Source: Octopus bimaculoides (lineage: Eukaryota). From it: 60,209 nt of DNA. Every line of letters begins with the position of its first letter. Position 1 is the stretch's first letter. A model generated the notes under the pieces. That model was not told the DNA's origin and made no database searches. It saw nothing but the letters and a program-made list of their open reading frames with translations. The translations under genes and the position numbers were made by a program. Shown one piece after another: positions 1,776 through 39,090 of the stretch. The stretch covers positions 97,004,688 through 97,064,896 of the forward strand of contig NC_068982.1 of assembly GCF_001194135.2 (NCBI RefSeq), given 5' to 3'.

Positions 1776-2132
1776 TTAAGAAATGGGGTTAAACGCAGGT
1801 TTTATTCAAATCTTTATACTTCCGACATATGTTGCGAAGAAAACATTGATATTATTCTGGAGGGAATAAAATGATGTAAAACAACGCAATCATCTCGTCA
1901 GGAAAAAAAACCAAAAAAAAACCATCAATAAGCCATTTTAACTGAATGTGATTACCGCGTATATGATTAAAATAGCTTATTGATGTATTTTGTTTCTGTT
2001 TTTTCCCTGACGAGATGATTGCATTGTTTTACATCATTTTATTCCCTCCGGAATAATATCAATGTTTTCTTCGAAACATATGTCGGAAGTATAAAGATTT
2101 GAATAACACCTGCCTTTAACCCCATTTCTTAA
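1776..2132. mobile_element. Fold-back element 1 carrying a hammerhead ribozyme (Penelope-like/retrozyme-type, non-autonomous)
   Basis: About 135 bp inverted arms (ttaagaaatggggttaaa...ctcgtcaggaaaa versus ttttccctgacgag...tttaaccccatttcttaa). The right arm runs into the N gap. Confidence 0.7.
2002..2089 (+). ncRNA. Type I hammerhead ribozyme with extended stem II
   Basis: UUCC(2003-06)-CUGACGA(2007-13)-stem II (GAUGA/UCUUC, CAUUG/CAAUG, UUAUUCC/GGAAUAA)-GAAAC(2073-77)-AUAU-GUC(2082-84)-GGAA. Stem III is the palindrome ACAUAUGU. Confidence 0.75.
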
Positions 2133-2309
2133 NNNNNNNNNNNNNNNNNNNNNNNNNNNNNNNNNNNNNNNNNNNNNNNNNNNNNNNNNNNNNNNNNNNN
2201 NNNNNNNNNNNNNNNNNNNNNNNNNNNNNNNNNNNNNNNNNNNNNNNNNNNNNTATATATATATTTATATTAAATCTCTGGGAGAGAAGTAAACAGTAGC
2301 AGCACGGAA

Positions 2310-2730
2310 TCGTGGAGTATATTTGTTCCATAGGGGATGATGCTACTGTTGTTTATAACCCCAGGAGAACATCTCCTCCAGCTGTCTAATGACACACTGT
2401 CTGTGTCTGATTAGTATTTGTGAAGGGAAATCATCGTTCCCATATCTAGCCTTATGTGATACACACAGACCCAGGTTTCTGAGTAGTAATCCGTCATCGG
2501 TATCTGGCGATTATCACACACTGATGACGGGTTACTACTCAGAAACTTGGGTCTGTGTGTATCAGGTAAGGCTAGAGATGGGAACAATGATTTCTCTTCG
2601 CAAATACTAATCAGACACAGACAGTGTGCCAATAGCCAGCTGGAAGAGATATCCTCCTGAGTCTATAACAACAGTAACATCATCCTGTATGGGACCACCA
2701 TATTTAGGTAGCAAATAAACTTCACGATAT
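2310..2730. mobile_element. Fold-back element 2 carrying a hammerhead ribozyme
   Basis: About 180-200 bp inverted arms centred near 2510. It shares its distal motif (gccagctggaagag...cctcctg...aacagtaacatc...atgggac) with elements 3 and 4. Confidence 0.75.
2515..2559 (+). ncRNA. Minimal type I hammerhead ribozyme
   Basis: CACACA-CUGAUGA-C-GGGU(uacu)ACUC-A-GAAAC-UUGG-GUC-UGUGUG. Stem I is a perfect 6 bp, and predicted cleavage is after C2553. Confidence 0.8.
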
Positions 2731-2943
2731 ATCTTCATGGCGTATCATCAAACCCTAAGACTTGTTGGCCTTAGGGTCTAATAATACGCCATAAAGGTAC
2801 TGTTTAAGGTGAGAAACCCAGGGTAACCCTATAAATAGGCTTTCACCAGCAATAAATAGAGACTGCTCTACTTCTTAGAGTGTTCTTCTCCGTTTTTATG
2901 TTTTTCTAAATAAAAAACGAGATATATATATATATACACACAT

Positions 2944-3111
2944 AGGCACAGGAGTGACTGTGTGGTAAGTTGCTTGCTTACCAGCCACACGGTTCCGGGT
3001 TTAGTCCCACTGCGTGGCATCTTGGGCAAGTGTCTTCTACTATAGCTTTGGGCAGACCAAAGTCTTGTGAGTGGATTTGGTAGACGGAAACTGAAAGAAG
3101 CCCGTTGTATA

Positions 3112-3144
<33 letters not shown>

Positions 3145-3363
3145 NNNNNNNNNNTGTGTGTGTGTGTGTGTGTGTCCCTAGCATTGCTTGACAAGCAACC
3201 GATGCTGGTGTGCTTATGTCCCCGTCACTTAGCGGTTCGGCAAAAAGAGACCGATAGAATAAGTACTAGGCTTACAAAGAATAAGTCCCGGGGTCGATTT
3301 GCTCGACTAAAGGTGGTGCTCCAGCATGGCCGCAGTCAAATGACTGTAAGAAGTAAAAGAGTA
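2944..3363 (+). mobile_element. tRNA-type SINE, family A
   Basis: Head gagtgactgtgtggtaag...ggttccgggtttagtcccac, internal microsatellite, tail ccagcatggccgcagtcaaatgactg. Multi-copy within the window. Confidence 0.85.
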
Positions 3364-3592
3364 TATATATATATATATATATGTATATATAGAGAGAGAG
3401 AGAAAGAGAGAGGATAGAACTAAGGGACTTAACTTACACAGTGTTTTCTTCTTCAAGTTTCCCCGTATTACCTCCCCTAAGCTAGCCTACGTGACTGCCA
3501 TTATTAATATTGATAGTCACACGCGTACTAGTTTCACTCCGACGTAACTTATCCAGATTTGTTGTTGGCGCCAACGCAGTCCGATTGTTAGA

Positions 3593-4351
3593 ATGGCGTT
3601 ACTGATTCAAGAGGTCAGTAGAGCTGCTCGTAGGGCCTTTTCTGGTGGTCTGAAGGAGCCCGTGTTCCAGGAAAAGCTGAACGAACTTGTTAAATTAATG
3701 AACCAAGTAAGAGGAAGAGATGTTAACTTTAACCCAGCTTTAACTGAGAGAAGCAAAAACAATAATGCTCCGGTCACATACATTCATATTTTTGAAGACG
3801 AAGTGTACAGTATGGGGATATTTGTCTTGAAAGAAAACAGCCGGATTCCTTTACATGATCATCCAGGTATGTTTGGGATAATTAAAGTCATCCATGGAAC
3901 TCTGTCTCTCGAATCATTTGATGAATTACCCGTTTCATCAGAACAACCTACCTCGTCTGCTTCCACTACAGCTACTAGCTTTAACAATGAATTTAAGAAA
4001 TTTCTCAGAGATTACGACAGGACACCAAAGCCATTTTTGGAGGTACCCAAAAAGAAAGCATCCGTGAACGACGATTGCTGTGTATTGTCACCTACAAAGG
4101 GTAACCTTCACGAAGTTCGACCCGATGGTGGACCTGCGGCCTTCCTTGATATCCTGGCTCCGCCCTACGATACGGACTCTGATAGGAGATGTAATTATTA
4201 CGAAATAACCAAAGGGCATTCGCCACCTAGGCCACTCAGTCAACCAGAAGACAGTTCTCAGAAAATATCATGGCTGGTTCAAATTCAACAGCCGTCTGAC
4301 TTTTGGTGCGACGAGTCTGATTACAACGGCCCCGAAATACCCAGCCATTAA
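3593..4351 (+). CDS. ADO: 2-aminoethanethiol (cysteamine) dioxygenase, PCO/ADO cupin family; single exon, 252 aa
   Basis: Intact ORF with VTYIHI, IPLHDHPGM (two Fe-binding His), NLHEV (third His), PAAFLDILAPPYD and RCNYY, the equivalent of the Cys-x-Tyr motif. Confidence 0.93.
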   Translation: MALLIQEVSRAARRAFSGGLKEPVFQEKLNELVKLMNQVRGRDVNFNPALTERSKNNNAPVTYIHIFEDEVYSMGIFVLKENSRIPLHDHPGMFGIIKVIHGTLSLESFDELPVSSEQPTSSASTTATSFNNEFKKFLRDYDRTPKPFLEVPKKKASVNDDCCVLSPTKGNLHEVRPDGGPAAFLDILAPPYDTDSDRRCNYYEITKGHSPPRPLSQPEDSSQKISWLVQIQQPSDFWCDESDYNGPEIPSH

Positions 4352-4960
4352 GGGGCCTCCACCGTATCACTTATTAATGTTGTCTTTCCCCATTCCAACA
4401 TTCATGTATTGTTTGTCTGACAATAGTACATGAACACCCTTACTCACATCATATTTGTAGATGATGTATTTTATTAAGGTTAAGGAATTTCCTCTCGTTG
4501 GGATTTTGCTTTTCACAGTTTATGTTTTTGTTGTGTTTTGTTATTCTAATAACAATGAATGCAAAACATTTTGGTGCTTATGAAATGACATTAGTAAATA
4601 ACAGTATGACATGTCAGAAACAGTTACTACCATACACATGCATTATATACATACATACATATNNNNNNNNNNNNNNNNNNNNNNNNNNNNNNNNNNNNNN
4701 NNNNNNNNNNNNNNNNNNNNNNNNNNNNNNNNNNNNNNNNNNNNNNNNNNNNNNNNNNNNNNNNNNNNNNNNNNNNNNNNNNNNNNNNNNNNNNNNNNNN
4801 NNNNNNNNNNNNNNNNNNNNNNNNNNNNNNNNNNNNNNNNNNNNNNNNNNNNNNNNNNNNNNNNNNNNNNNNNNNNNNNNNNNNNNNNNNNNNNNNNNNN
4901 NNNNNNNNNNNNNNNNNNNNNNNNNNNNNNNNNNNNNNNNNNNNNNNNNNNNNNNNNNNN

Positions 4961-4996
<36 letters not shown>

Positions 4997-5394
4997 GCAT
5001 ACAGGCACGTATGAGTATGTATGTACTTACGAATGAGTGTATATATTGTTTCTTCTGGGCGGAGTCTCATAAAATAGACAATATATAAAAATGAAACCAA
5101 ACAGACCTTTTTAACAAGTAAAAAAGCATATCTTCGAAAGATATGTTGCATCCAAATGTTTGTTTTACGAAAGTGAAACTGATGTAAACTCGAGGATCTC
5201 TCTTTCTCTATCTATCTATATATATTTATACATACATATGTGTGTGTGTATACACATATATTTACACACAGATGCCATTTTCAGATGGAACTATATGCGC
5301 CTTTAATGCTCATCACATGAATGTCATCATTTTTCATTCCGAATAAATATGTTAAAAAAGAAAGGTAAAGGTCATTTATGCATTCCTCTCTCCT

Positions 5395-5444
<50 letters not shown>

Positions 5445-6249
5445 TAATGTATGCAAAATTATATATAAAACTTTCCTAAATATTTTGTATAAACCTTTAA
5501 CATATTTCTTGTAAGGTTTATATTGTAATAATTGTTTTAAAATCGAATTTGCATCAGGAACTTTTGTGCAATATTTATTTATTTACTTTTAAATTCTAAA
5601 GTCACACATGGTTCCATTTAATGAAACACTGAAAATAAAGAATACAGAACCTTTTCTGATTCTTCAACTGATATGAGATTTGATTCTTTTGAATATTGTA
5701 GAACATTTCCTGATTGTGTATAAAAATTTAATTGTTACCTAATGAAAATGAATGGCAGATGATTTAATGACTCAAGCAGCCTGACCCTTCTCACCAATTT
5801 CTTGGTATCAAATATATAACAACTATCTTTGGATATATCTGGTGATACCTAACCCAGACAACGAAGATGCATTAGTATTAAGATGCATGATGAACCAGCC
5901 TCAATTGTTTGAATTGAAAGTATGGGCTAGACTCTGTAACCCAACACTATATTCCAGCATTTCGTTACTATTACTTTTACTATAATTTAATTCAGGGATT
6001 TTTAATAATTTTCATTAGATCGTCTATAGTGTTAGGTTTTTAGCAAACTAAATTCCCAAATACCTTTTGTAGAAAATATAGAAATATGTGGATGTCATTT
6101 AATTCAATACCATAATTTTCAATGTGTGTGTGTGTTTATAAAGAAACCATTAATAATTCCAAAGCAAGTTGTTGGAATCTGTGCAGACTGTAGAGAGCAT
6201 GGCTAAAGCTTTCATTGTATCTAGTTGAATATCTTGATAGCTGAATATT

Positions 6250-6357
6250 TTTAGAAGTGTATAATTTTGAGTTCAGTCCCACTGTATGGCACCTTGAGCA
6301 AGTGTCTTCTACTATAATCCTGACCCAGAACCAGAGAAGAGTCCACTGTATGTACGT

Positions 6358-6421
<64 letters not shown>

Positions 6422-6610
6422 GTACATGAGTGTGTGCTACTGTTTCCTTGCCTTGACATTGTGTGATAGTTGTAAGCAAGTGTCACTGTCATGCAAGCAG
6501 TGTCTTTTGTTTCAAATCGTCTGTGAAAACATGTTTGGCCATGAGGAAATATTACCTTACTTGGAAAGAAATAAAGGTTGGCAACAGGAATCATTTCAGT
6601 TAACTGTATC
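6250..6610 (+). mobile_element. SINE (family A head, RTE-like tail variant), copy 1 of a local duplicate pair
   Basis: Near-identical to 7535-7860, including the private motif cctgacccagaaccagagaagagtccactgtatg. Confidence 0.75.
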
Positions 6611-6834
6611 TCCCTGCACACCGAAACTGGCCTTGCAAGACATTTTACTGAAAACTTTTATTTTTGAATGTATTTAGTATTTTAATCTTGAATTTAAAAA
6701 TCCCAATACATGTCATGTAATTGGTATTTTGGGGATAATGCTTAGCCCAATTCATCCTTGATCAAGCAGACCCATTATCAAAGCCATTCTAGTCATGCCC
6801 ATCCTTTCTTTTTGTATAGCAGACATGTGACTTT

Positions 6835-7215
6835 GGAGGCACTGATGTGGATGTGTGGTAAAGAAGCTTGCTTCCCAACCATGTGGTTAAGGGTTCAGTC
6901 CTATTGCACAGTACCTTGAGCAAGTGTCTTCTACTATAACTCCACACAGGCCATGTGTGGATTTTGTATGTGAAAACTGAAAGAAGCCCGATGTTTGTGT
7001 GTGTACCTTTGTCTTGACATCATGTGGTGGTTGTAAATGAGTATCACTATCATACAAACAAGTTTATTTCCAGTTTTGCAGGAAAATATTCCCTTGTTAG
7101 AAAATGGATCAGAGTTGGTGTCAGTAAAGTTGACATTTGCTGTTGAAAATTTACCTCAATTTCTGTCTGACTCTTGCAACTATAGAAAGGTGGATGTTAA
7201 ATGATGATGATGGAC
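6835..7215 (+). mobile_element. Decayed SINE with RTE-like tail
   Basis: Head tgtgtggtaaagaagcttgcttcccaacc; ends in gtggatgttaaatgatgatgatg. Confidence 0.7.
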
Positions 7216-7534
7216 TGCATTGTACAATGTGGCATTCCTTAGTTGTTAAGATGGTGTGATTTGAGGACTGTAGTTTCTAGCAGGTTGAGTTGTACAAGTC
7301 TGAACTTGAATTTTTACGAATGGTAGAAAATTTTGTTTAAACTTTGTTACAAGCTTACTTTATCTTTCATCCATCTAGGTCAATAAAATATCTACCATCA
7401 AAATGCACACAAATTAGTGTCAAACCAATTTGGTAACCTTTATGTCATTGTTCAACTTACAACAAATAGCAGTCAAATCTCATTCAAATCATACTTTTGT
7501 AATTTAAAAAAAAATGTGTGGTATTAAGTTTGCA

Positions 7535-7640
7535 TCTCAACCACATAATTTTGAGTTCAGTCCCACTGTATGGCACCTTGAGCAAGTGTCTTCTACTATA
7601 GTCCTGACCCAGAACCAGAGAAGAGTCCACTGTATGTATG

Positions 7641-7685
<45 letters not shown>

Positions 7686-7945
7686 GTACATGAGTGTGTG
7701 CTACTGTTTCCTTGCCTTGACATTGTGTGATAGTTGTAAGCAAGTGTCACTGTCATGCAAGTGGTGTCCTTTGTTTCAAATCGTCTGTGAAAACATGTTT
7801 GGCCATGAGGAAATATTACCTTACTTGGAAACAAATGAAGTTTGGCAACAGGAAGTGTATTTGGCTGTAGAAAACCCACCTCAGCAAATTCTATCTGATA
7901 TGTGCAAACATGGAGAAGAGAATGGTTAAAATGGTGATGATGACG
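7535..7945 (+). mobile_element. SINE with RTE-like tail, copy 2 of a local duplicate pair
   Basis: Matches 6250-6610 and continues to a (tga)n-like tail. Confidence 0.75.
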
Positions 7946-8129
7946 TTTAATATGATCTATGATACACTATGTCTGTCAAAAAGCAGTATGGTCACAGGAA
8001 TACTCTTATGACTGCTTACTTGACAACTACTTGGTTGCACTGCTTTTGCAAATTCCCATGACTCCCTGTCACCATCCAATTCCATTATTATGAATTTGAA
8101 TTGGGACCTTGAGTCATAGTGAATCTTTC

Positions 8130-8490
8130 AGAGTGGCTGTGTGGCAAGTAGCTTGCTTACCAATCACATGGTTCCAGGTTCATTCCCACTGCGTGGCACC
8201 TTGGGCAAGTGTCTTCTTCTATAGCCTCGGGCTGACCAAAGCCTTGTGAGTGGATTTGGTAGATGGAAACTGAAAGAAGTCTGTCGTATATATGTATATA
8301 TATGTATGTGTATGTATATGTTTGTGTGTCAGTGTGTTTACATCCCCAAACTTAGCGGTTTGGCAAAAGAGACTGATAGAATAAGTATTGGGCTTACAAA
8401 GAATAAGTCCTGGGGTCGATTTGCTTGACTAAATGGCGGTGCTCCAGCATGGCCGCAGTCAAATGACTGAAACAAGTAAAAGAGTAAAGA
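8130..8490 (+). mobile_element. SINE family A
   Basis: Same head and tail as 2944-3363. Confidence 0.85.
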
Positions 8491-8907
8491 GTAACTATGG
8501 ATGCATTGCAGTTACTCTCTTGATAGTGCTTGGTGATCCTGACTATTGATCTAAGATTACTCAGCATCAATGTAAGAAGCACTGTTGGCTTAGTTGAGCT
8601 CTTCCACTACCTCTTCACAATCTGTCATACTGCATTCCCATGACTTCGCCTTGTCCCTGGCAAAGTGACTGAATGGCTGCTGTGCCTTGCCAAGGGGCAA
8701 CCTGTAACTATGCATGGCATGGTTATCATTCCATAAGATATTTTCAAAATGCCTGCATACCCATTGACAATTACAAGATCATAAATTAGCCTTGTGTGCA
8801 GTCAAAGTTTTAGACATTTTCAATTGTTATGTATGAATGTGCTCTGAAACTATTTTGGATGTATTTGAGAGTTTATATATATATATATATATATAAATAT
8901 ATACATA

Positions 8908-9480
8908 CAGGTTGTGATGGGTAAATTGTTGCCATTTTGTATTTTTAATTTCATGCATGTGCATTGTTTGTTTTTGATTTTGACTACACAGTATAATAGG
9001 GTCAATTGGGCACCGTCTGTGAGAAAAACACCACCATGACACAACTCACTCAGCCAGAAATTTGGAAACAGCATGTACTGCTTGGCATTCATGCCGGAAC
9101 CTCCAATATGAACATTTCAGAATGTTTGGGTTTCAGTCTGAGGACATATATCAAGACTGATAAAAATTAAAACATCCAGTCAGCATCATGGTGTTTGGAG
9201 TGATCATTAGTGTTGGTGATGTTATGCCTCCATTCATCTTCCCACAGAAGATTATGGTAGCATTCACCAAGTTAAACAAGGAGATCATCCAAAGAGTTGT
9301 AGGAGATTCCGAAGTCGTCTGGAGGCTGTAATAGAAGCCAATAGCAATTTTATTGAATAAATTTACTCTTTAGTATTTCAAGATATTTTTCTGTAATTTT
9401 GGTAAAATTTGTTAAAAAGAGATGTCAGTGCTATTTTCACTTTTGTGTAATTTAGATAACAGTTTAATCACTGCACCTTG
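8908..9480 (+). mobile_element. Internally deleted maT/DD37D-like Tc1-mariner element
   Basis: TA-flanked ends (caggttgtgatgggtaaa...tttaatcactgcaccttg). Homologous to 17743-18574 and 40483-41748. Confidence 0.8.
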
Positions 9481-11334: not shown

Positions 11335-11530
11335 ACACAAGGCCAGAAATTTTTTGGGAGGGGGCCAGTTGATTAGATCGACTCCAGTACATAACTGGTA
11401 CTTAATTCATCGACTCCGGAAGGATGAAAGACAAAGTTGACCTTGGAATTTTAACTCAGAACGTAAAGACAGATGAAATACTGCTAAGCATTTCGCCTGG
11501 CGTGCTAATGATTCTGCCAGCTCGCTGCCT
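11335..11530 (-). mobile_element. SINE family B
   Basis: Reverse complement of aggcagcgagctggcagaatc...ttctgagttaaaattcc...ctttcatcctt. Confidence 0.75.
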
Positions 11531-11729
11531 TCATGAACATTAAATATTGATGTTTCTAAAGAGTGAAGGAAATTGACTGCTTTTCGAATAATTGGTACAT
11601 GCTGGGGTACCACTATGATGGATTTAGTCATATAAATTAACCCCAGTTCATATTATTTTTTTACTCCTCTTCCTCCTCCTCCTTCTCCTTTATCATCATC
11701 ATCATTATCATTATCATTATCATTATTAA

Positions 11730-11950
11730 GAAGGCAGTGAGCTGGTAGAATTATTAGCACGCCGGATAAAATGCTTTGCAGCATTTCATCCATCTTTACA
11801 TTCCAAGTTCAAATTCTGCCAAGGTTAGCTTTGCCTTTCATCCTTTTGGGGTGAATAAATTAAGTATCAGTGAAACATTGGGGTCGATGTAATCAACTAG
11901 TCTCTCCATCCCCTCCAAAATTTCAGGCCTTGTGCCTATAGTAGAAAGAC
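11730..11950 (+). mobile_element. SINE family B (CpG-decayed)
   Basis: aaggcagtgagctggtagaa...ttcaaattctgccaagg...ggccttgtgcctatagtagaaag. Confidence 0.75.
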
Positions 11951-12737: not shown

Positions 12738-12772
<35 letters not shown>

Positions 12773-15700
12773 GCAATTAAAATAATTTTAATTAAAGAAC
12801 TAGTACTTTATTTTATTTATCTCAAAAGGATGAAAAGAAAAGTTGGCTATGACAGGGGTTGAACTTATAAAGGGAAGTCAGGCATTTTGTCTGATACTAA
12901 TGCTGAATCTATCATTATAATGATTACTAATATTAGTATATGGTTAGGAATTTGGGAGGGGAGTGTAGTTAATTAAATCAATTCCAAAAATACAAATGTA
13001 GTGCCTTTATCAGGATATAAAGTTTTGATCTTTTGGTTAGTGATCGATCATCTGTAGCTGATTTGAGGAAGATAAACTGGTATATAAACTTGATTAGTGT
13101 TAGATGTGGTTTACTTTGGGAGAGAATATTCTGATTTAATAGCATTGTTTTAAACATTATCAATGATAATGGAGTGCCCCAGCATAGCCACAGGCTCGAT
13201 GCCTGTAAAAGAGAAAGCAAAACTAAATCAAAACAAAAAAGAACCAATAAATGAGCCCCTGTTGTTTTGCCCATGATCAATCTGTGAGCAAAGGCATTCC
13301 AAATACGACCATCCCATTTTTTTTGAGTATCTAGGACTACTGTTATCTAATGTGTCATTTTTTTTTTTTATTTAAAATAGAATATTTGAGAGAAATTGCC
13401 TGCTGTTTTTAGCAAGTCCAGAAATCACTTAGAGACTCAAGTTGCTTGATCTGCTTGAGTTAGCAATGAAACCGCCTTCAAATCACACACTACAATTTTT
13501 AAAATGGATGAATATATTGAATATTGTATTTCTTGGTGCACTGTACATAGGTAAAAGGATAGGATGGCCACAGGTGGATTGTTTTTGGTTTAGTCAGGGC
13601 TGATCTGTGGCTAAACTGCAGCAAGAGACAAAAAATGCAAATAAACAACATTCTTAAGTCCTAGTGAACATTGTTGACAATGGCAAAGCTGATGGATATC
13701 TGGTTGATTAAAGCACTCTTGAGATTCAAACACTTAATAAGATTATACTTAATTAATGTTATTTCGGCAGTTCACAACAGTTGATTAAGTAAGAAACTTG
13801 AGAAGTTCTGTCATTAAGTTTTGCCTTTTTCCTCGTTTTTCTTCCCATTAATACACACCACCACCAACACCACCACTGCTGCTGCTGCCTTCATCATCAT
13901 CATCCTCATCATAATCATCATCATTTCAATTATGTAGTAGTAAATCTAGTCTCTTCAATATAACAATCAATACTTAATTGCTATTCTGAAATCAACACAT
14001 GTAGTCTGTTACCTTTTTGTTTGATTTAAAAGAGATTTAACTGCTGTTTCTAGTAGGATGAGTGACTACCTTTGGATACCCCTATGGGCTCAGTTAACTT
14101 CTGATCTTGTAGGAATTTTGGTTGAATCTACTCCAGTTATTTTATCATTCCTGTAGAGATGGAAGTCCATGCAAAAATGATTGGGTTTGAACTCAGAGCC
14201 AAGATGCAAGAAAGTTACTACTGTATTACAATTCATCCAGTGGAATTATTGCTTTCATTGCCCCTAATACTCACATTAAATTTTGGTTTCTTGCATTGGT
14301 ACACAGCTACACATTTGTAAGGAAGGGATGTTATGGAATGTTTTTTTTTTCTCTATCTTTTAATCAGATAGGAAGGCAGTGCTGAATGATTTGTCAGCAG
14401 GTGTCCAAGATTGGTGAGAAGAAAAGAGGAAGATATCATCAAGCTGGAGCCCTGGTCTGAATGTCTATACCACACTGGATTCCATTAAAGTAATCTAAAG
14501 TGCCTGGTGGTGGGCTACTGATTAAGCCTACCATCCAATTGACTCAGATTACTGGTAAATATTTTATTGTTCTAGGATGGCTGAAAGACAAATCTGGTAG
14601 GGTCTGAAGTCATTTTAAACTAAATAATTGATCCATATTTTGGCATAAGGCTAGTGATTTTTAAAGGGAGGTGTTAAATGGTTACATTGACCCCTAGTTT
14701 TTGTCTCATATTTTATATTATTGACCACAGAGGGATAAAAGGTAGAGTTGACTTTGAATTGAACTCAGAACTTTAAGGGTAGGAATAAATTTAGCTAGGC
14801 ATTTTTCTGATACTCTAATACTTCTGCAAGCTCAATGCCTGATGTAAAATTATTTCAGGCATTTTGCCTGACAGTCAACCATTTCTGCCAGTTCAATTTA
14901 CAGTCAAGTATATGTGCCAATGATGAAACTTTTATATCAGTACCTCTCAAAGTAGGTAATATGAACCCTGGGACTCTGGAAAATTTTATATGGGTACCAG
15001 GAATAAAGCGGGGTGTAGGGGTGCACAGTAGATACATCTGTACAGTTTTTTTTTTTGCTTTTATATCCTATTTAAATATTGACTTCAAAAAAATTTCAAA
15101 TGTAACATTATGATAAACTACCTGTTAGTTACAATCACAAGAGTGACAGTAACATTAACAACATCAAAATCATTAATAATAGACTTTAAAATGTGAATAA
15201 GTAAACCAAACTGAATATATACCTCATTTGCTTATAGTAGTGTGTTACTGGGTAGTTAGAACTAAATTACCCTGGTCTGATTTTATGGGTATGTATATTA
15301 AAAACAGGCAGGAAGTGGGGCTTTGAATCATGGCAAGGGTTCAAGCCTTGAAAAACCTGAGTAAAAGAAAAAGGGTGATAGTTAAAAAGTCTGAGAAGCA
15401 CTTATCTGTTAGGTCATTCAAACTGCTAGAAATTGCGGCAAGATTTTCCTCAAATCACACCCTACCATTTTAAAGAAGGAAGAACACAGGATAATGTAGT
15501 CCTATATACATTATGCTTGAGTTAAATATGGGATGGTCATAGTTGGAATACATTTAATCAGATCTATGCTGATACAGAAGTAAATCCTTTCTGTTATAGG
15601 TACAAGGCCCGAAAATTTGGTGGGAGGGGACTAGTCAATTACATCGACCTCGGTGATAAACTGGTACTTTATTTTATTGATCCTGAAAAGGTGAAAGGCA

Positions 15701-18584: not shown

Positions 18585-20035
18585 CACCATCATCATCATC
18601 ATTTAACGTCTGTTCTTCATGCTGGCATGGGTTAGACGGTTTGACCGGGGCTAGTAAGCCAAGAGGCTGCACCAGATTCCAGTCTGATTTGGTATGGGCT
18701 CTATGGCTGGATGCCCTTCCTAATTCCAGCTACTCTGAAAATGTAATGGTTGCTTTTACATGCCACTGGCACAGGTGCCAGATACATGACACTGGTATCT
18801 GCTACGACTATGATTTCACTTGGTTTGATGGGTCTTCTTCTCAAGCACAGCATATTGCTTAAGGTCTTGGTTGTTTATCATTGTCTCCATGAGGCCCAAC
18901 ACTTGAAAGGTGCTTTTAACATGCAACCAGCATGGGTGCCAGTTACGTGCCACCAGCACCAGCCATAACTACAATTTCACTTGGCTTGTCAGGTCTTCTC
19001 AAGCATGGCATGTCATCAAAGGTTTCAGTCATTAGTCATTGCCTCCGTGAGGGCCAAATTTCGAAGATCATGCTTCATCACCTTGTCCCATATCTTCCTG
19101 GGTCTACCTCTACCACAGGTTCTCTCCACAGTTAGAGACTGGCACTTCTTTACACAGCTGTCTTCATTGATATGCATCACATGACCATAGTGCAGTTGTC
19201 TCTCTTGCACACCATATCTGGTGCTTCCTATGTCCAACTTTTCTCTCAAGATGCTTACACTCTGTTGTACATGCACACTGACATTGCACATCCAGCAAAG
19301 CATACTAGCTTCATTTCTTTCAAGCCTATGCATGTCCTCGGTGGTCACAGCCAATGTTTCACTGCTGTGTTTGCACAGGCGTCATACTGTCTGCCTTTCA
19401 CTCTGAGAGGGAGACCCTTTGTTGCCAGCAAAGGTAGGAGCTCTCCGAACTTTTCCCAGCCTAAACTTATTCTCAGAGCTATGCTCTCGGAGCATCCACC
19501 TCCGCTACTAACTTGGTCACATAGATAATGGCAGCTATATACTACCTCTAGCTTACCACCACCCCCTTGCAGTTGATGGAGTCTATTTTCTGTACATTTT
19601 TAGTGTTTATTGCACCTGTGCACCTTCCAAAAAATCTATTTTCCCAGTTAACCTTTCTCTGATTTTGCTGCACCTCTTATGTGTCCATAGCTTGCACTGG
19701 GTACATCTTATGGAATTTCTACCAAAGCCTTTTCTACAGATCAAGCGGGGCCATCTACCTGAAGGGATTTGTGATTTGTCTGCTCTCCTACTTATTATGA
19801 CTTTGGTTTTTGCTAGATTAACTCTAAGGTCCTTTATTCCAGACCTTGCTTCCACGCCTAAAATTTCTTCTCTAGCTCTGGTAGTGATTCAGCTATAAGA
19901 ACAAGGTCATCAGCACAGGGGAGCTCCCAGGGGTAGCCAGACTTAAATTCGTCTGTTATTGCCTGGAGGATTATGGACAAGAGGGGGCTGATGACTGATC
20001 CTTGGTGAACCCCTACTTGTACTCTGAATTCTTCA
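18585..20035 (-). mobile_element. 5'-truncated RTE LINE
   Basis: Minus-strand VGVHQGSVISPLL, ADDLVL, a CTQCKLWTHKRCS Cys/His segment, MHRLERNEASML and RGRPRKIW, then a (gat)n tail. Confidence 0.85.
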
Positions 20036-29985: not shown

Positions 29986-29989
29986 ATAT

Positions 29990-30945: not shown

Positions 30946-31922
30946 CATGCGCACAAAAATCAAATAAGCACTTTGGACGATTATTTTGAAACTTCACTTT
31001 AGCATTATTACAAATTAGTGCTCACCTAGAATATTCTGAAGCACCTCCAGTCACCAAAGTCTGGCGACGGGCCTCACACACGCACGCATACACACCTTAT
31101 TTGCTGGTGTAGAAGACGCACTCCTACTTTACGTGTTTATTTTATGAAAACAAAAATTGGTACGTTTTCATCGTACATTTATTGAAAGATATTTTAAGGT
31201 GGTTTTATAAGGAAAACTTATGATTCTGGGTTAACAGTTTTGTGACAATATAATGGGATAAAATATGAAATATTTTAATTGGTTTCATATTTTATTCCAC
31301 GTTACATATAATTTATCACATATAAACAGCGTTATGGGACTAGCTTATTTAATTTTTATCTTCTTTCAGATCAGCTGCATCGCTGTTTATATGTTGGTCC
31401 AGAGAATTACCATACAAAATCTAAAAAATGTATTTTTCGCTGTTGATGTTTGTGTAACCGTAATCGGTCTCCAAGGAGGTGCACTATCACTATGGTTTGT
31501 TGCCGTGCACTCGATGCAGATATCTGACAGATGGATGGAAATTTAGCTTTCCTTTCGTCTTTCCAAGAAGTTTTCATTTAGATTAGACAATTAAAAAAAA
31601 TATCTTTTAAAGGTGAGAGAGTCATTAGGAAAATGTAAGATTTATATCAGTGAGGAAGGGGGTATAAATAGATGGAGCGGCTCTCACCTAAGTGCAGACG
31701 TACCGTAAGCAATATTTTTCGTACGTTTGTGTTTAGAGTACGAGACAATTTGACTTGTTTTCAATATCTACTATTATACACTTGTTTTTCTCCGTCACAA
31801 CATATGAATGAGAAAGGAAGGGGTGATAGCTGAATAAGGAAGGGATGATGGCAAATTGATAGTGGGAGCGTTTCAACTCTGTGTGAGTATATGTATGTAT
31901 ATGTAAAAGGGAGATATGTGAA

Positions 31923-31954
<32 letters not shown>

Positions 31955-32584
31955 CAACGGAAGTGGGACGGTAAACATTCAACGCCGAAAAGAAAAACGG
32001 CGTTTCAGCCCTGTGTGAGTCTATGTGTGTACGTGTACAAGGGAAGTATGTGAATGTTTGTATGTGTGAACTAGCGTTCTTTCAGTAACAAGCGCTGATC
32101 GATGTCTCATCTAAAAAGACAACCACTAGATAACATTGACAAGTGTATTAATTTGATTTACCATCAATATCTACTATAATAATACTCTTGTATTTTCCTC
32201 CGTCACAACATATGAATGAGAAAGGAAGGGGCGATGGCAAACTGGTAGTGGGAGCGTTTCAACTGTGTGAGTATATGTGTGTGTATGTAAAAGCTATGTG
32301 AATGTTTATGTGTGTGTGTGCGTGTGTGTGTGTGTGTAATGGAAGTGGGATGGTGAACATTCAACGCTGAAAAGAAAAATCAAACAGCGTTTCAGCCCTG
32401 TGTGACTATATGTGTGTCTGTGTGTGCGTGTAGAAGGAAAGTATGTGAATACATAATTGAACCAGCGTTCTTTCAGTAACAAACGACGATCAATGTCACA
32501 TGTCAAAAGACAACCATTAGATAATATTGACAAGTGTATTAATTTGATTCACCATCTGTATTTATATATAAAATACTACAATTA

Positions 32585-32797
32585 GCCGTCATTTTGGCAC
32601 AAGGCCAGCAATTTCGAGGGAAGAGGTTCAGTCAATTACATCGATTCGTGCTCAACTGGTACTTTCTTCGTCGACCCCGAAAGAGATGAAAGGTAAAGTG
32701 GACCTCGGTGGAATTTGAACTTAAAACATAAGAACAGACTAAATACCGCTAAGCATTTTACCCGACGTGTGAACGATTCTGACAGCTCGCCGCCTTA
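32585..32797 (-). mobile_element. SINE family B inserted in the Helitron
   Basis: Reverse complement of aaggcggcgagctg...ttcaaattccaccgaggtc. Confidence 0.8.
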
Positions 32798-34186
32798 AAT
32801 TGTTTATATATTGAGATGTGTTTATTATTACAAGAGCAAAATCTTTGTTAAACATCTCCCAGTTACACAAACTGTTGTGAATGCGTAGTCATGTGGATGC
32901 TTTGTTACTGTCGTTGTGGGGTTTAGCTGACCTCATGTATATTAAATGAATCTACTCACGAACGTTTAACTTTTATATATTTATTGCTGGACATGATTTA
33001 CTGCGTTGGCTGTTTACAAAAGAAAGATGTCAATAGTATAACCACTGAATAGGTGGAGAGGACCTTGCTGCGTCTATAGAAGGCTAGCTAAGATCCTGTT
33101 ATCTCTTACTCGAGGTGGTTGTTCGAATGTCCGTGACCGACTGGTCTTAGTGGTCTGCCGAAGCCGTCCGGCTGAGTTAGGTGCCAAAACGGTTTTCATA
33201 GGGTGAAAAGGGGACGAGTTTTAGATAATCGAAGGAGCCATGTCACACCACAGCTTCACGCCGATTGGTCGATTTATAGATCAATCACATGAAACTGTGG
33301 TCGCTCACTTGCGATCCCTAACTGAATATCTTGGAGTTGGGGTTCGAATCCCTACAATATTATCCTGTAACTCGAGAAGATGACCCCTAGTACAAACAAT
33401 TATATGAAATGTTTTTAATATGGAGTTGAAATTGTTCTTGCAACGGACTTCAAATTAGTCATTGATGTAGAGAAGTAAACCCAAGGGCAGCGCCGTCGTC
33501 GATTCAATGAAGCAAACTGCAATAAGGTTGTCTTGACCGTGAGTGACTAAAAGCATTGAAAAAGTTTCAGGGCATCAACGTCAAAAAGATACATGATCAG
33601 CGACGCTTATCAGGCCGCTTATCTGTATACATAGAGAAGACGGATATCACATTGAAATTTCCCATACTCAGAGAACAAAAACTGTGTCATGTATAGATTT
33701 TTACTTAATGCCTCGTTATGACTACTACAGACACTTGCAACAATGTTACAATTTATTCCACAAGTATGGCGTTGATATGTATACTAAAGTTGAGACTGAA
33801 ATGTTATTAAACACTAAAACACCGAAAAAAGATTGCATGTGGACTCGTATGTTTATATAAGAGATAATATCAACAGAGATAGAGCCAAATGATCTAGTCA
33901 TCTGAGCTTGCTTCCAGTCAATTTCTCAGGAAGTCCAAGATACATGCTTGGATTTTTTGAGCAGGTCATGGTCTATGTCAGAACTTACGGAAGGACAGAT
34001 CACATCTTCATTTTCATCTGCAATTCTGTTCGGAAATAGGGGAGTGAATATTTCGGCTCATGAATCTATTAAGAACCGATAGAATTTGTTAGTCAGAGGT
34101 GCTTTTGACAAGCGCACACCAAAATGAAGCACCTTTTAACAAAATATGACATCTTCAGTACTACAAGGTGTGTTATGTACACTATA

Positions 34187-34911
34187 GGGCTTTCCTATAA
34201 GGTGTTATCCACCCCTGATTGGAACTCTCCCGTATGACATGTACGCATGCTCAGTGACTTGCTTTAACAGTTGCAATCAGCTGAATGCACATTGCCAGTG
34301 ACATTTGACATAATTACCCACACTCTGTGGTCAGGATTCTTTTTTTGGTTTGATGTCGGTATCGAAGGGATTACCAGACACCGGATAATACAGTGAGAGC
34401 AGCTTTCACTCACATCGTGGTATTCGATGCTGTGTACGTGTCTGTCGTGGTAAAATATGCCNNNNNNNNNNNNNNNNNNNNNNNNNNNNNNNNNNNNNNN
34501 NNNNNNNNNNNNNNNNNNNNNNNNNNNNNNNNNNNNNNNNNNNNNNNNNNNNNNNNNNNNNNNNNNNNNNNNNNNNNNNNNNNNNNNNNNNNNNNNNNNN
34601 NNNNNNNNNNNNNNNNNNACTTCAGACTTATCGTCCGATGAATTTACTTTGTTGACATATCGACAGAATTTTTATACCTTTCAACCTTTCAATCAAATCC
34701 GCCTTTCTTCCAGTAACATACTGTCCATATAATCTTAAATATTTCTTTAACTCAGGTACAGTAAGTACTTCGATAGCTGAATCATCAAGCTGCTTTATAT
34801 CCATGATAAGACGTAAAACAATAACAATGGCGTGGGTTAGCCTCCGGAAGTTTAATTATCTACATGGAGCGCCGCCTAGCCAAGGGAGATAACCTACTTA
34901 TAGGAAAGCCC
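34187..34911. mobile_element. Non-autonomous TIR element (MITE) inserted in the Helitron Rep
   Basis: TIRs gggctttcctataag / cttataggaaagccc, flanked by TATA on both sides. Removal restores atg tac act ata gag tgg cag (MYTIEWQ). Confidence 0.8.
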
Positions 34912-35764
34912 TATAGAGTGGCAGGAAAGTGGCCTTCTTTCATACATTTTCATTTAGATTAAGAAGACAAAGTTCAGTGCTGTCAAATAGGCTTAATTAT
35001 ATTGACAGAGCTTCCAGAATCAATATTACCGACCAAACTTTTTTTGACACGCCAAAAGATCAGTGGTACTAGGGTAATGTGGGCTCCTTAATCCGAAATT
35101 TACTCGCATGAAAAACAATAAATGCGTTAAAAGTATCCCAGAAAATTGATAAAAGAAATTAAATCTGGTGTATATCCACTTTATAGAAGAATAGACTAAA
35201 AGATCTGTCGCTAAGACAGAAATGATTTAATTGACGACGATGGTTCGTGGGATATTACCCGCTTTTTGCTCACATTAACGTTGAATTATGTTTCTCAGTC
35301 AAAGCAAAAGCAAACATACACGATATATATTTCTTTATTGCCCACAGGGGGCTAAACACAGAGGGGATATAGCGACTCAATTTTTGTTGGGAAGGCACAT
35401 TAGCCGCAATGAAGCATTCTAGCGTGTAGTTTTGGATTTCAAATTCTTGAACGGCACTTTTGTCATTGAAAGCAAAACTCAACATACCACAATTAACTGA
35501 ACTTCTATAACCACTAAAAATACTGCAGCTAGCCATCCTCTACAACAAAGTCCAAACCATTTCCTAATGTCCACCTTGAAAATGCTTAAAGAGTTTACTT
35601 TCCTGAAGAGAATCAACAGATACTGGCTCCAAAAAGTATAACTCCGACTACTTCCTTTAATCTTTGTCAGGAAGATTACTTTGCACGTATACTATTTCAT
35701 TCTGAAGTTATATATTTTCTGCATATGAATTAAAAGAAAATAAAGTATATATTAAGCAAAGTAG

Positions 35765-36467
35765 CTAATTATAGAAAATCTCTATAAGAGATGAAAGTAG
35801 TAACTATACTTCGAAGTAATGTTTGTCGCCACTTCAACATGGCTGTTCGGTAGGAACCGACGTTACTACCGTTTTTAACCCCCAGAAAGACGTCTCCTCC
35901 TGCTGATTATCGATGCAACCTGCACCCGATATATATTGCAGGCAGGAGAGGGAAAGCCTACCATCTTCTAGCGACGACGGGACCACCATCGATGACCAGC
36001 TGGAGGAGGCGTCTCCTGGAGCTAATAGCAGTAGTAACGTCGGTTCCTACGGAATAGCCACGTTAAAGTAGTGATGAACATTACTTCTCAGTATAGTTAC
36101 TATAGTTACTACTTTCACCTCTTATAGAAATTTTCTGACTAGCTACTTTACTTGTTGCAAGATCAGTGACTGGCCGTCTCTTATTTTTCTATATATTGCG
36201 AGCTGGAGCGTACTATTACTATCTCTAGCGGATGGGTGTCCACCACTGAGGATGAACTCAAATAGCTCGAAACCGGACTATCTTGTAGTCCCGTCGTCGC
36301 TAGAAGACAGTAGGGGTTTGCTCCTTTGCTAGCAATATATACCGGGTGCAGAATGCAGCGATAACGAGCTGGAAGAGATGTCTTCCTGGGATTAAAAACG
36401 GTAGTTACATCGGTTCCTGCGGATCAGCCACATTGAAGTTGTGATGAACATTACTTCGAAGTGTATA
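35765..36467. mobile_element. Fold-back element 4 (inverted arm + partial unit + full unit) with a degenerate hammerhead
   Basis: 35765-35985 is inverted relative to both 35995-36135 and 36290-36467. Direct-repeat period is about 369 bp (agctgg at 35998 and 36367). Confidence 0.65.
36240..36278 (+). ncRNA. Degenerate hammerhead-like motif
   Basis: ccacca-CUGAGGA-U-GAAC(ucaaaua)GCUC-GAAAC-CG-GAC. It has GAC instead of GUC, and the 3' strand of stem I is lost. Confidence 0.4.
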
Positions 36468-36758
36468 TTTGTAGTGGATCTTGCATGCATGAAGTGGATT
36501 CGATCCACTATAGCCAAATTTAAATCAACACTGCAACATAACTTTTCCCAATAGTTTTTCTCTGACAGCAGTTTAATATTTTCCAGATGCCTTTAGCTAG
36601 GCCGAAACAATGTCTTCCCCACTTGACCCTTCCTAACCTCTTCTACTCCACGAAAATCTAGAATAGAGATAACAGGACCACCAGCTGAATCCATTGTTCT
36701 CAATAATATATCTATCCTTCTGGATTGTTATAAAAGCAAGGAAATCCCAAGCAAAATT

Positions 36759-36975
36759 TAGTTTAGTCACCAGTCGGTGACGACTCAACTAGTTTAGTCA
36801 CCAGTCGGTGACAACTCAACCAGTTTAGTTACCAGTCGGTGACGACTCAACTAGTTTAGTCACCAGTTGGTGACGACTCAAGCAGTTCAGTCACCAGTCG
36901 GTGACGACTCAAGCAGTTCAGTCACCAGTCGGTGACGACTCAAGCAGTTCAGTCACCAGTCGGTGACGACTCAAT
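36759..36975. repeat. 31 bp minisatellite x7 with an internal hairpin
   Basis: Unit tagtttagtcaccagtcggtgacgactcaac; each unit contains GTCACC-agtc-GGTGAC. Confidence 0.95.
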
Positions 36976-37306
36976 GAGAACAAAGTCTGGCTGACCAGCT
37001 AGAACCTTGGCCAGAAGAAAAAATGAAGTTTACTGCTAGCAACTGTGAAACAACGCCCCACACTCTATAACTTTTACTAGCCCATTTCTTTTCTCAGTAA
37101 CATTACCATATCTCTCTGTCTATTTACTACTACAAGATCGTGTACACACATATACAGGCCGAAATTAACTTTCTTTGCCTTGCATGCTTTACGAACTGTG
37201 TTATACTATTACACTAACCTACCCGTCGTGGTATGGCATTTATTAAAGTAACGGTAAATAAATATTTCTTTACAACTTCGATCATTGTTCTTCGTTCATC
37301 TTATAA

Positions 37307-37499
37307 CCGTTACAATTGGTAACTACACAAAATTAGCATCGCTACAACCAAAAACATTATCGTACAATTGGTGAACCCGAACAAGAGAATTACTGCAATA
37401 GCAACCAATCTCTACCGTTACAATTGGTGACCCGCGACTACAACCTAACACCTATCGTTGCAATTGGTAACCCTCCGACACTAACAAATTGCCGTTACA
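37307..37499 (+). repeat. Array of 4-5 LTR-end/PBS-like motifs (cgttacaattggtrac) with variable spacers
   Basis: Motifs at 37307, 37360, 37415, 37455 and a partial one at 37492; spacing 37-55 bp. Confidence 0.6.
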
Positions 37500-38180
37500 T
37501 ATTCATAAAAGAAAAAAACAAAACAAAAAACAATCCAGCTTTGTAAATGATCATCTTCGAATTTTTAAACATCTACACTTGACAAGCATCTACACTGTTT
37601 ATTCAGTCCAGTAAGAGTACTTTTACCTTTGTATATTGTTTCATGATATCAGATGCTCAATATCCTTCAATTATTTGCAAGCAGATCAAAGTTAGTTGAG
37701 CAATGTATGTGACTCTAAATTTGCCTCATTCCTTGGTTAAATTTAAACCTTTAACCATCTTCTTTCTCTTTTTACTTTCGTTCATCTAAAATAGATGTTA
37801 ATTATATTCCGTGCTTGGAATTTTAAAGGTTCTCCTTTTAAATTCCGTGGTTCTATTTATTAAAGATAAATATTCATCAGATATTTTTTTATGTTACTAT
37901 GTTTTTTTCTCTTTTAAAATATTTTCTGTATTAATAAGATGAAAATGGTTGATGTAATCAACTGTTAATTCTGAAAATAACACGATAAAACGTATGAACA
38001 TGAGGTTAACTGTAAGGTCACTAACCTTAATAAATATGTGTGCGCAAGTGTATACATATAACCATGAATACATACACACATAATACATACATACATACAT
38101 ACATATATGATGTCAATAAACTTAAAGGTGCGTGTGTGTGCGTGCTTGTATGTGTATATGTGTGTGTGTGTTTGCGTGCG

Positions 38181-38261
<81 letters not shown>

Positions 38262-38475
38262 AATACATTTCTAAATCTCTCAGAGAGATTTATGCAGTAG
38301 TGATGCGATAAAGTAGTTGTATGCTGTTAACTTAATGTGACAGTCCCATGAAGGGTATAATACTACTGCTATTTAGCTCTAGGAAGCAGCACCGCATCCT
38401 GTTGGCCTTGACACATTTCCTGTGTCCTTATGTTTCCAATGGGGAGACAAGCAACTCCACTTAGCTAAGCCTGCA

Positions 38476-38518
38476 TCCAGAGACATGTTTCTGAGTCTTT
38501 GCTCGTCATCAGTCTGGA
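38476..38518 (-). ncRNA. Minimal type I hammerhead ribozyme
   Basis: Exact reverse complement of 38789-38831. Confidence 0.8.
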
Positions 38519-38788
38519 GTAGCAATGGCCTGCTAGTTGGAGATGCCTCCCCCTTCTAAACATAAGAACACTGGAAATATGCCAAGGCCGACAGGAAGCG
38601 GTTCTGCATCCTAGGGCTAAATAGCAGTAGTATTATTCCCTTCATGGGACTGTCACATTAAGTTGACAGCATACAACTACTTTATCGCATCACTACTGCA
38701 TAAATCTCTCTGAGAGATTTGAAAATGTATTATTTCTACTATATGTTTACGAGAGCTTGACAGGCATCAACTAGCAGGCTATTGCTAC

Positions 38789-38831
38789 TCCAGACTGATG
38801 ACGAGCAAAGACTCAGAAACATGTCTCTGGA
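38789..38831 (+). ncRNA. Minimal type I hammerhead ribozyme
   Basis: UCCAGA-CUGAUGA-C-GAG(caaaga)CUC-A-GAAAC-AU-GUC-UCUGGA. Stem I is 6 bp, stem III is the palindrome ACAUGU, and predicted cleavage is after C38825. Confidence 0.8.
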
Positions 38832-39041
38832 TGCAGGCTTAGCTAAGTGGAGGTGCTTGTCTCCTCCTTGTAAACATAAGGACACAGGAAACGTGTCAAG
38901 GCCGACAGGAAGCGGTGCTGCTTCCTAGGGCTAAATAGCAGTAGTATTATTCCCTTCATGGGACTGTCACATTAAGTTGACAGCATACAACTACTTTATC
39001 GTATCACTACTGCATAAATCTCTCTGAGAGATTTAGAAATG

Positions 39042-39090
<49 letters not shown>

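Follow-up and report, generated by a model that had tools for sequence, protein, structure and literature searches.

Fold-back elements with hammerhead motifs in octopus DNA as probable insertion products of short, non-coding retroelements

A 60,209-nt stretch of Octopus bimaculoides DNA (NCBI RefSeq assembly GCF_001194135.2, contig NC_068982.1, positions 97,004,688 to 97,064,896 of the forward strand), referred to here as the window, contains four fold-back elements, E1 to E4, that carry type I hammerhead ribozyme (HHR) motifs. We consider it probable that these elements are insertion products of short, non-coding hammerhead retroelements, most likely mobilised in trans by Penelope-like elements (PLEs), and that they are non-autonomous PLE derivatives of the 'retrozyme' type. 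This reading draws on the motifs and their excess over chance, the architecture of the copies, a filled and an empty site in two other octopus species, 5'-truncated copies and the lack of coding capacity. A preliminary description of the window, made from its letters alone, had likewise placed the elements with PLEs and retrozymes rather than with miniature inverted-repeat transposable elements (MITEs), and the motif excess, the palindromic helix III and the PLE-type insertion architecture support that assignment. It had also regarded the elements as fold-back by nature, a view that has to be given up, as the fold-back is a head-to-head dimer made on insertion and not the element's own form.

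Results

Hammerhead motifs in the fold-back elements

A repeat finder recovered all four inverted-repeat elements where the preliminary description had placed them, with arms 78–92% complementary. The three intact hammerheads and the degenerate fourth reported there were read in the sequence, E3 being the element without helix I, and the proposed cleavage-site cytosines at 2084, 2553 and 38825 were confirmed. A second intact E4 hammerhead, on the minus strand, had escaped that description. The motifs, in window coordinates, are:

1819–1904, minus strand: E1 mirror hammerhead, dead, A13 changed to C (GCAAC for GAAAC)
2003–2088, plus strand: E1 hammerhead, UUCC CUGACGA (59-nt helix II) GAAAC AUAU GUC GGAA, C17 at 2084
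2462–2506, minus strand: E2 mirror hammerhead, degenerate, U4 changed to C (CCGAUGA for CUGAUGA) and one helix II pair broken
2515–2559, plus strand: E2 hammerhead, CACACA CUGAUGA C GGGU UACU ACUC A GAAAC UUGG GUC UGUGUG, C17 at 2553
36246–36295, plus strand: E3 hammerhead, degenerate, CUGAGGA...GAAAC...GUC, helix I gone
38476–38518, minus strand: second intact E4 hammerhead, same sequence as the plus-strand motif
38789–38831, plus strand: E4 hammerhead, UCCAGA CUGAUGA C GAG CAAAGA CUC A GAAAC AU GUC UCUGGA, C17 at 38825

The core nucleotides C3-U4-G5-A6-N7-G8-A9, G12-A13-A14 and U16.1-H17 are correctly ordered and spaced in E1, E2, E4 (both strands) and E5, the last being a fifth, unrelated hammerhead family at an O. 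sinensis locus described below. Helix I measures 4–6 bp and helix II 3–5 bp, except in E1, where helix II is long and imperfect. In E1, helix I (UUCC/GGAA) is accompanied by a 59-nt imperfect helix II hairpin closed by G10.1-C11.1 and by the palindrome ACAUAUGU. E2 pairs CACACA with UGUGUG in helix I and GGGU with ACUC in helix II, the latter lying between an opposed C and A, and its ACUUGGGU is self-complementary through G-U pairs. The same opposed C and A flank helix II of E4 (GAG/CUC), which has helix I UCCAGA/UCUGGA and the palindrome ACAUGU. The degenerate E3 motif retains a bulged U, a helix II (GAACU/AGCUC) with one A·C mismatch and a 9-bp hairpin as helix III. All four families have a self-complementary helix III (ACAUAUGU, ACUUGGGU, ACAUGU and ACAAUUGU), and an additional nucleotide separates A9 from helix II in E2–E4. 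The core mutations of the E1 and E2 mirror copies should abolish cleavage.

Excess over chance, covariation and folding

Searches used a strict descriptor consisting of CUGANGA, helix II with an optional bulge, GAAA, the segment from A15.1 to U16.1, H17 and helix I. Over the 60 kb and both strands it matched only three times, at 2521–2553, 38795–38825 and 38512–38482 (minus strand), against 0.10 expected from 300 dinucleotide shuffles, or 0.013 if helix III has to be palindromic. A looser descriptor, which admits the long helix II of E1, gave four matches against 0.015 expected (200 shuffles). By these descriptors, intact type I cores are confined to the four elements. Two minus-strand matches to a relaxed descriptor, at 19002–18973 and 16420–16348, were set aside as chance-level, with 1.5 expected.

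E2, E3 and E4 are distant homologues with a mean column identity of 49%. Between E2 and E4, the block formed by the core and helix II is identical at 21 of 26 positions, and the string CUGAUGACG.G......ACUCAGAAAC is nearly exact in both. Helix I of these two elements differs by three compensatory double changes (C-G to G-C, A-U to C-G and C-G to U-A) with zero broken pairs, and helix II by one change from G-U to A-U, a hand-read comparison of only two diverged homologues. MAFFT misaligned the short hammerheads and formal pair counting was therefore dropped. The preliminary description had claimed covariation of stem I across the three intact cases; this holds for E2 against E4 and does not extend to E1, which belongs to a family unrelated to E2–E4.

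Folding gave a mixed picture. The hammerhead-constrained fold of E1 has −13.1 kcal/mol compared with −16.1 kcal/mol for the unconstrained minimum. Folded as a circle, the E4 unit reaches −103 kcal/mol against −75 ± 5 kcal/mol for shuffled sequences (z = −5.4), and its minimum-energy structure retains hammerhead helices I and II; none of the remaining units showed unusual stability as circles. For E5, the minimum of the cofold is the double-hammerhead form.

Fold-backs consist of polar units with outward 3' ends

The arms of E1 (1776–1941 and 1967–2132) are 92% complementary. Those of E2 (2353–2506 and 2515–2668) are 87% complementary and are followed by outer arms at 2318–2353 and 2667–2702. 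E3 (35754–36467) combines two inverted pairs, 35798–35882 with 36018–36102 and 35873–35986 with 36285–36398, with a direct repeat of 370-bp period. E4 (38258–39050) likewise combines an inverted pair, 38258–38449 with 38544–38735 (91%), with a direct repeat of 314-bp period, and its arms 1 and 3 agree at about 90–95%. Each fold-back resolves into copies of a polar unit:

1776–1968, minus strand: E1 left unit, full length of about 193 nt, 3' end at 1776, 90.6% identical to the single copies of O. sinensis and O. vulgaris
1967–2132, plus strand: E1 right unit, 5'-truncated by about 27 nt, 3' end at 2132 beside a gap, 96.4% identical to the O. sinensis copy
2262–2506, minus strand: E2 left unit, 3' end adjoining (TA)n just past the gap
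2507–2728, plus strand: E2 right unit
35754–35986, minus strand: E3 arm 1, inverted copy, 5' truncation just inside hammerhead helix III
35987–36155, plus strand: E3 arm 2, 5'-truncated copy, partial tandem, resembling a pseudo-long terminal repeat (pLTR)
36156–36467, plus strand: E3 arm 3, tandem period 370 bp, 3'-truncated relative to arm 2
38258–38535, minus strand: E4 arm 1, inverted copy, 3' end at 38258 beside (TG)n
38536–38735, plus strand: E4 arm 2, 5'-truncated copy, hammerhead-free
38736–39050, plus strand: E4 arm 3, full 314/315-nt unit, 3' end ...AAATGTATTAT adjoining (TA)n
57988–58147, minus strand: E4b, lone copy of the 3'-terminal 160 nt of the E4 unit, truncated at the 5' side, 98% identity with arm 3 of E4

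In all five fold-backs (E1–E5) the copies have their 3' ends outward and their 5' ends central. Units are about 160–370 nt long with a GC content of 27–45%, and (TA)n tracts adjoin E2 and E4. Tandem extent in E3 and E4 is at most about 1.6 units each, with one intact hammerhead per strand in E4. The first ~33 nt of E4 arm 3 (38736–38768) occur at the tandem junction only and resemble the 'tail' of PLE insertions. The solo copy E4b ends at the same terminus as E4 (...AAATGTATTAT) and lies outside any microsatellite. A fixed 3' end combined with a variable 5' end points to target-primed reverse transcription and not to cut-and-paste transposition. Tandem periods of 314 and 370 bp further indicate a template only a few hundred nucleotides long.

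Among the 84 open reading frames (ORFs) of at least 75 aa scanned in the window, none encodes a reverse transcriptase (RT) or GIY-YIG domain, hence the probable non-autonomous status of the elements, and exact look-ups of the ORFs inside E2 and E4 matched no record. No A-to-G bias between arms, the signature of ADAR, was found when looked for. The E2 right arm is interrupted in its 3' part by a 70-bp hairpin at 2730–2799, whose 30-nt arms are 83% complementary. This hairpin could be a nested insertion, and homology of the right unit to the left arm may resume beyond it, up to about 2835, as judged from weak similarity.

A repeat annotator could label such elements as MITEs, and it might be asked whether they are MITEs or foldback-type DNA transposons, for instance TA-targeting derivatives of Tc1/mariner, with an incidental hammerhead-like motif. 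They are indeed small, non-coding, near-palindromic and located at TA-rich sites; the target-site duplication of E5 is not legible within (TA)n; and a true mariner-like element with 114-bp terminal repeats adjoins E4. The arms, on the other hand, are entire copies of a polar unit rather than short terminal repeats, a third arm in direct orientation is present in E3 and E4, and the one-sided 80-nt tail of E5 belongs to the insertion. E4b and the single E1 copies are lone-arm insertions in which the 3' end is fixed and the 5' end varies. A hammerhead core with palindromic helix III also recurs in four unrelated families, with four matches where 0.015 are expected. Classic terminal inverted repeats with fixed target-site duplications, named in the preliminary description as the mark of DNA transposons, are not what is seen here: there are third arms, a tail on one side only, and lone copies that are 5'-truncated and share their 3' end. 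A DNA-transposon origin appears highly unlikely.

The mariner/Tc1-like remnant itself (39175–39907) lies just past the (TA)n of E4; it has 114-bp terminal inverted repeats and a reading frame, is hammerhead-free, and is a genuine DNA-transposon fold-back that contrasts with E4. Two further repeats were seen. An inverted pair resembling short interspersed nuclear elements (SINEs) at 11367–11898 has arms of about 80–165 nt, 79–83% complementary, an AT-rich spacer and no hammerhead core. Between E3 and E4, at 36728–37006, a 31-bp unit (TAGTTTAGTCACCAGTCGGTGACGACTCAAC) is present in about nine tandem copies, each with the palindrome GTCACC-AGTC-GGTGAC.

Assembly of the palindromes

A gap at 2133–2253 starts directly after base 2132, the end of the E1 right arm, and E2 starts about 10 nt past it, behind a short (TA)n run, so the spacing of E1 and E2 is not readable across the gap. 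E1, E2, E3 and E4 themselves contain zero N bases, and the remaining gaps of the window fall between elements and leave the finding unaffected. The E1 right arm is complete, because the E1 copies of O. sinensis and O. vulgaris terminate at the same ...CCCCATTTCTTA. No independent assembly of the locus was found in the collections searched; the sole record with the ADO gene of the window is CM046602.1 (GCA_001194135.2), which is 100% identical and has the same gaps.

The palindromes could in principle have arisen during the assembly of a gapped scaffold from short reads. A gap follows immediately on the last base of E1, with E2 close behind it, PLE insertions are known to disrupt short-read assemblies (PMC8557442), and at the corresponding loci of two other species E1 has only one arm and E2 is missing. 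Arms duplicated by chimeric assembly would be identical, whereas those observed differ by 4.5–20%. E3 and E4 are far from gaps, and E5 shows the same architecture in an N-free locus from another species' assembly. We regard an artefact as extremely improbable.

Orthologous loci contain single E1 copies and a further insertion

The window contains an intact, intronless 2-aminoethanethiol (cysteamine) dioxygenase gene, ADO (3593–4351, plus strand; Pfam PCO_ADO), whose protein is 97% identical to that of O. vulgaris and O. sinensis and 82% identical to that of Argonauta hians. Its orthologues led to gap-free 20.7-kb comparison loci in O. sinensis (L002) and O. vulgaris (L003). Both contain the E1 unit as one arm each, with an intact core, and E2 is absent from both. 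The 3' end of these single copies lies on a microsatellite and their 5' side is cut by a long interspersed nuclear element (LINE); in O. sinensis, a 5'-truncated LINE adjoins the inner end of the single E1 unit. LINE-type fragments resembling RT are present at 999–1670 of the window (minus strand) and at 6649–8197 of L002 (plus strand). The L002 fragment matches Pfam RVT_1, while the window ORF has no Pfam match and is RT-like by motifs only.

The O. sinensis locus contains the following features, in L002 coordinates:

1–6120: head-to-head PLE copies, 1–1213 against 1806–3018, 100% complementary
3659–3623, minus strand: PLE-linked hammerhead, UUGAUAA GGUUC...GAACC GAAAC AU GUA
4205–5554: further PLE copy, the one with a weak RT match
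15100–15489: E5, fifth and unrelated hammerhead family, hammerheads on both strands

The arms of E5 match at 165 of 165 aligned bases, with two gap positions, and its hammerhead reads CCAC CUGAAGA UUGUC GAUCAA GACAA GAAAC AAUU GUA GUGG. The insertion includes an 80-nt tail, on the right side only, and is located entirely within (TA)n, where a target-site duplication is unreadable. The corresponding site in O. vulgaris (L003 15188–15238) is empty, an uninterrupted (TA)26 with flanks that are 99% identical. Given this empty site, comparison of the two loci suggests that E5 is probably a recent insertion in O. sinensis; a deletion in O. vulgaris could also produce the difference. The filled and empty sites delimit a complete insertion with mismatch-free arms, a tail on one side and (TA)n as its target, and the simplest reading is that the palindrome formed in a single event. 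This insertion fits the priming on both strands and the internal initiation of a PLE protein in vitro (PMC11167929). A repeat of about 500 bp with an internal (TA)n occurs at 6139–6657 and 7487–7966 of the window and at 14914–15638 of L002. Its internal (TA)n is the target of E5 in O. sinensis, and the repeat therefore offers many potential targets.

PLEs are present at the same locus. Their ORFs match the GIY-YIG domain; one of these matches passes the Pfam cut-off, and the same ORF has a weak match to RVT_1. The 3' untranslated region of one of these PLEs is also present as an inverted copy, which shares that element's 102-bp repeats and carries the PLE-linked hammerhead. Two different PLE-type 3' ends face the (TA)n at L002 3550–3575. 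The PLE-linked hammerhead lies about 50 nt from a 3' end that adjoins (TA)n, and 300 shuffles gave 0 comparable matches. Its U3 is accompanied by A8, a core covariation reported for Schistosoma PLEs. C17 of E1 lies 48 nt from the 3' end, in a similar geometry. On the basis of the PLE-linked motif, octopus PLEs do carry minimal hammerheads, placed with respect to the 3' end as that of E1 is. The Argonauta locus, the sole octopod locus reached through protein searches with the L002 PLE and LINE ORFs, gave no match to the hammerhead descriptor.

The units might also be heavily 5'-truncated 3' ends, or solo pLTR pieces, of autonomous PLEs elsewhere in the genome and not dedicated elements. Strong 5' truncation is typical of PLE insertions (PMC8557442), Cervera and de la Peña interpret most dispersed minimal HHRs as truncated PLEs (PMC4209133), the E1 copies are just 166–198 nt long, and the E1 hammerhead and the PLE-linked one are similarly placed. 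In E3 and E4, however, the 3' end of a unit runs straight into the 5' part of the next, and such tandem junctions imply that the template was the short unit and not an element of 3–4 kb. The E5 arms moreover have one common, defined inner end. We judge truncated PLEs to be a credible but unlikely source, and prefer dedicated short retroelements.

Observations that weigh against the retroelement reading

Several observations count against PLE-mobilised hammerhead retroelements. The preliminary description had proposed covariance-model searches and comparison with PLE termini as checks, and the former came out negative. The Rfam hammerhead models, run without a known minimal HHR as a positive control, gave no match at the gathering score or at E ≤ 10 in the whole window or in three shorter windows of 161–661 nt, so membership is unsupported by Rfam; cmscan returned only matches to miRNA models, of a generic hairpin or microsatellite kind. 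No unit showed similarity by BLAST to the PLE copies of L002. The PLE link accordingly rests on architecture and precedent, as no autonomous PLE with shared termini was found among the copies of that locus. Arm divergence is unequal: E4 arms are 95.5% (1 vs 3), 92.6% (2 vs 3) and 90.7% (1 vs 2) identical, and the E1 right arm is closer than the left to the O. sinensis copy (96.4% against 90.6%), which is unexpected for a single insertion and hints at gene conversion or at successive insertions into one site. The sample is also small, about 100 kb of octopus DNA in all.

The remaining points concern the ribozyme. G10.1-C11.1 is the conserved pair that normally closes hammerhead helix II, and it is present in E1, E3 and the PLE-linked hammerhead of L002. 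At 10.1/11.1, E2 and E4 show C opposite A (alternatively read as G-C with an additional A preceding G12) and E5 shows U-A, and the 59-nt helix II of E1 is imperfect and interrupted. With these non-canonical positions and the long E1 helix, ribozyme activity may be weak or absent.

This leads to a further explanation, in which the motif is conserved in a non-ribozyme role as a structured recognition site for the mobilising enzyme. The non-canonical 10.1/11.1 of E2, E4 and E5 would suit such a role, as would copies left unscored by the Rfam models; published PLE minimal HHRs cleave poorly in vitro, even as dimers (PMC4209133), and Naiad PLEs thrive without HHRs (PMC8557442). Yet the catalytic core (C3-A9, G12-A14, U16.1 and H17) is fully kept in four otherwise unrelated families, and the single family with U3 also has the compensating A8. 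A purely structural role is in our view distinctly unlikely, and a hammerhead that acts as a ribozyme remains the preferred interpretation.

The Rfam scans also gave weak, sub-threshold matches to SCARNA7 (16–30 bits against a gathering score of 65) at 31841–32013, 32204–32405 and 55394–55559. These stretches are probably a dispersed repeat and not a gene.

Discussion

A possible life cycle can be outlined, in which self-cleavage, circularisation and the identity of the mobilising enzyme are inferred. A multimeric or tandem master transcript would be produced, and two neighbouring minimal type I hammerheads would pair through the palindromic helix III and cut it to unit length. Target-primed reverse transcription at (TA)n or other AT-rich DNA could then copy the unit RNA, which a cellular ligase may first have made circular. 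A PLE enzyme would nick and extend both target strands and begin copying at an internal site of the RNA. Extension of both strands from an internal start would yield a head-to-head inverted dimer with its 3' ends outward, and some products would also acquire another partial copy in tandem or a tail on one side. The genomic fold-backs are probably inert, since a two-arm transcript would lock the hammerhead in a long duplex with its own antisense.

Full-text literature searches found no paper on hammerheads in cephalopods. A 2026 repeat annotation of O. vulgaris reports active Penelope elements and 893 unclassified SINE families, and the word 'hammerhead' is absent from its text. This kind of element is already well established in other animals, and the present work extends hammerhead-bearing elements of the PLE/retrozyme type to cephalopods. 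They should not be annotated as MITEs, a label that a repeat annotator could assign to them, as it could that of unclassified SINEs. The opposed C and A beside helix II form a natural core variant of interest for ribozyme activity. A far-reaching and rather improbable extension is that the octopus has several abundant, still-active, palindrome-forming hammerhead families (about one per 15 kb sampled) with the C/A core variant and with (TA)n insertions that seed long, perfect hairpins. If so, hairpins in (TA)n would be a lineage-specific source of double-stranded RNA, as substrates for ADAR or small-RNA pathways, and of microsatellite instability.

Comparison with known systems

The closest parallels to the motifs are the minimal HHRs of PLE pLTRs (Cervera and de la Peña 2014, PMC4209133). 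These are likewise of type I with an open helix I and an absent or very short, palindromic helix III that implies dimers, and palindromic helix III and an extra nucleotide after A9, here present in E2–E4, are among their listed features. From such features Cervera and de la Peña argued that PLE minimal HHRs are non-random (PMC4209133). The motifs of both sets vary widely in sequence between families and are dispersed or paired on opposite strands, dual motifs 100–700 bp apart having been reported for PLEs (PMC4209133), and the U3-A8 variant occurs beside an octopus PLE. Unlike in PLEs, the copies have no RT or GIY-YIG ORF between them or nearby. The place of G10.1-C11.1 is taken by an opposed C and A in E2 and E4 and by U-A in E5, and helix II of E1 is 59 nt long.

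As insertions, the elements resemble those of PLEs, for which Craig et al. 2021 (PMC8557442) described partial tandems with a 5'-truncated copy inverted beside them, a tail on one side, a preference for (TA)n and problems in short-read assembly. A PLE protein in vitro cleaves and extends both target strands and initiates internally on RNA (Frangieh et al. 2024, PMC11167929). The octopus insertions share the inverted 5'-truncated copy beside a partial tandem, the tail on one side and the location in (TA)n or AT-rich DNA; the inverted pair is combined with a partial tandem in E3 and E4 and stands alone in E1, E2 and E5. The copied unit differs, being a few hundred nucleotides long and ORF-free, and the E5 tail has about 80 nt compared with the usual 30–40 nt.

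Metazoan non-LTR (long terminal repeat) retrozymes (Cervera and de la Peña 2020, PMC7229834; Li, Clavereau and Pollet 2026, preprint) share the non-coding unit of 170–400 nt, low GC, the type I HHR and tandem junctions. For their RNA, as for that of E4, a high degree of structure is predicted, and mobilisation by PLEs has been proposed; the preprint argues that animal retrozymes are non-autonomous, pLTR-derived PLE derivatives. Retrozymes form head-to-tail arrays, whereas the copies here comprise at most 1.6 tandem units and are mainly head-to-head. Those of invertebrates have canonical, monomer-cleaving HHRs with loop–loop contacts, in contrast to the minimal HHRs of the octopus elements, which are known from DNA alone.

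MITEs and foldback elements are similarly small, non-coding, near-palindromic and located at TA-rich sites. They lack the arms made of polar units with a fixed 3' and a variable 5' end, the third arms, the tails and the solo 5'-truncated copies seen here.

Hammerheads also occur in SINE-like and satellite repeats, such as Sm-alpha of Schistosoma and satellite 2 of newts. Compared by description only, these repeats too are short, lie dispersed or in tandem and carry type I HHRs, and the HHR of newt satellite 2 is likewise dependent on dimers owing to a weak, palindromic helix III. Sm-alpha and newt satellite 2 have canonical helices I and II with loop–loop contacts, and in this respect differ from the octopus elements.

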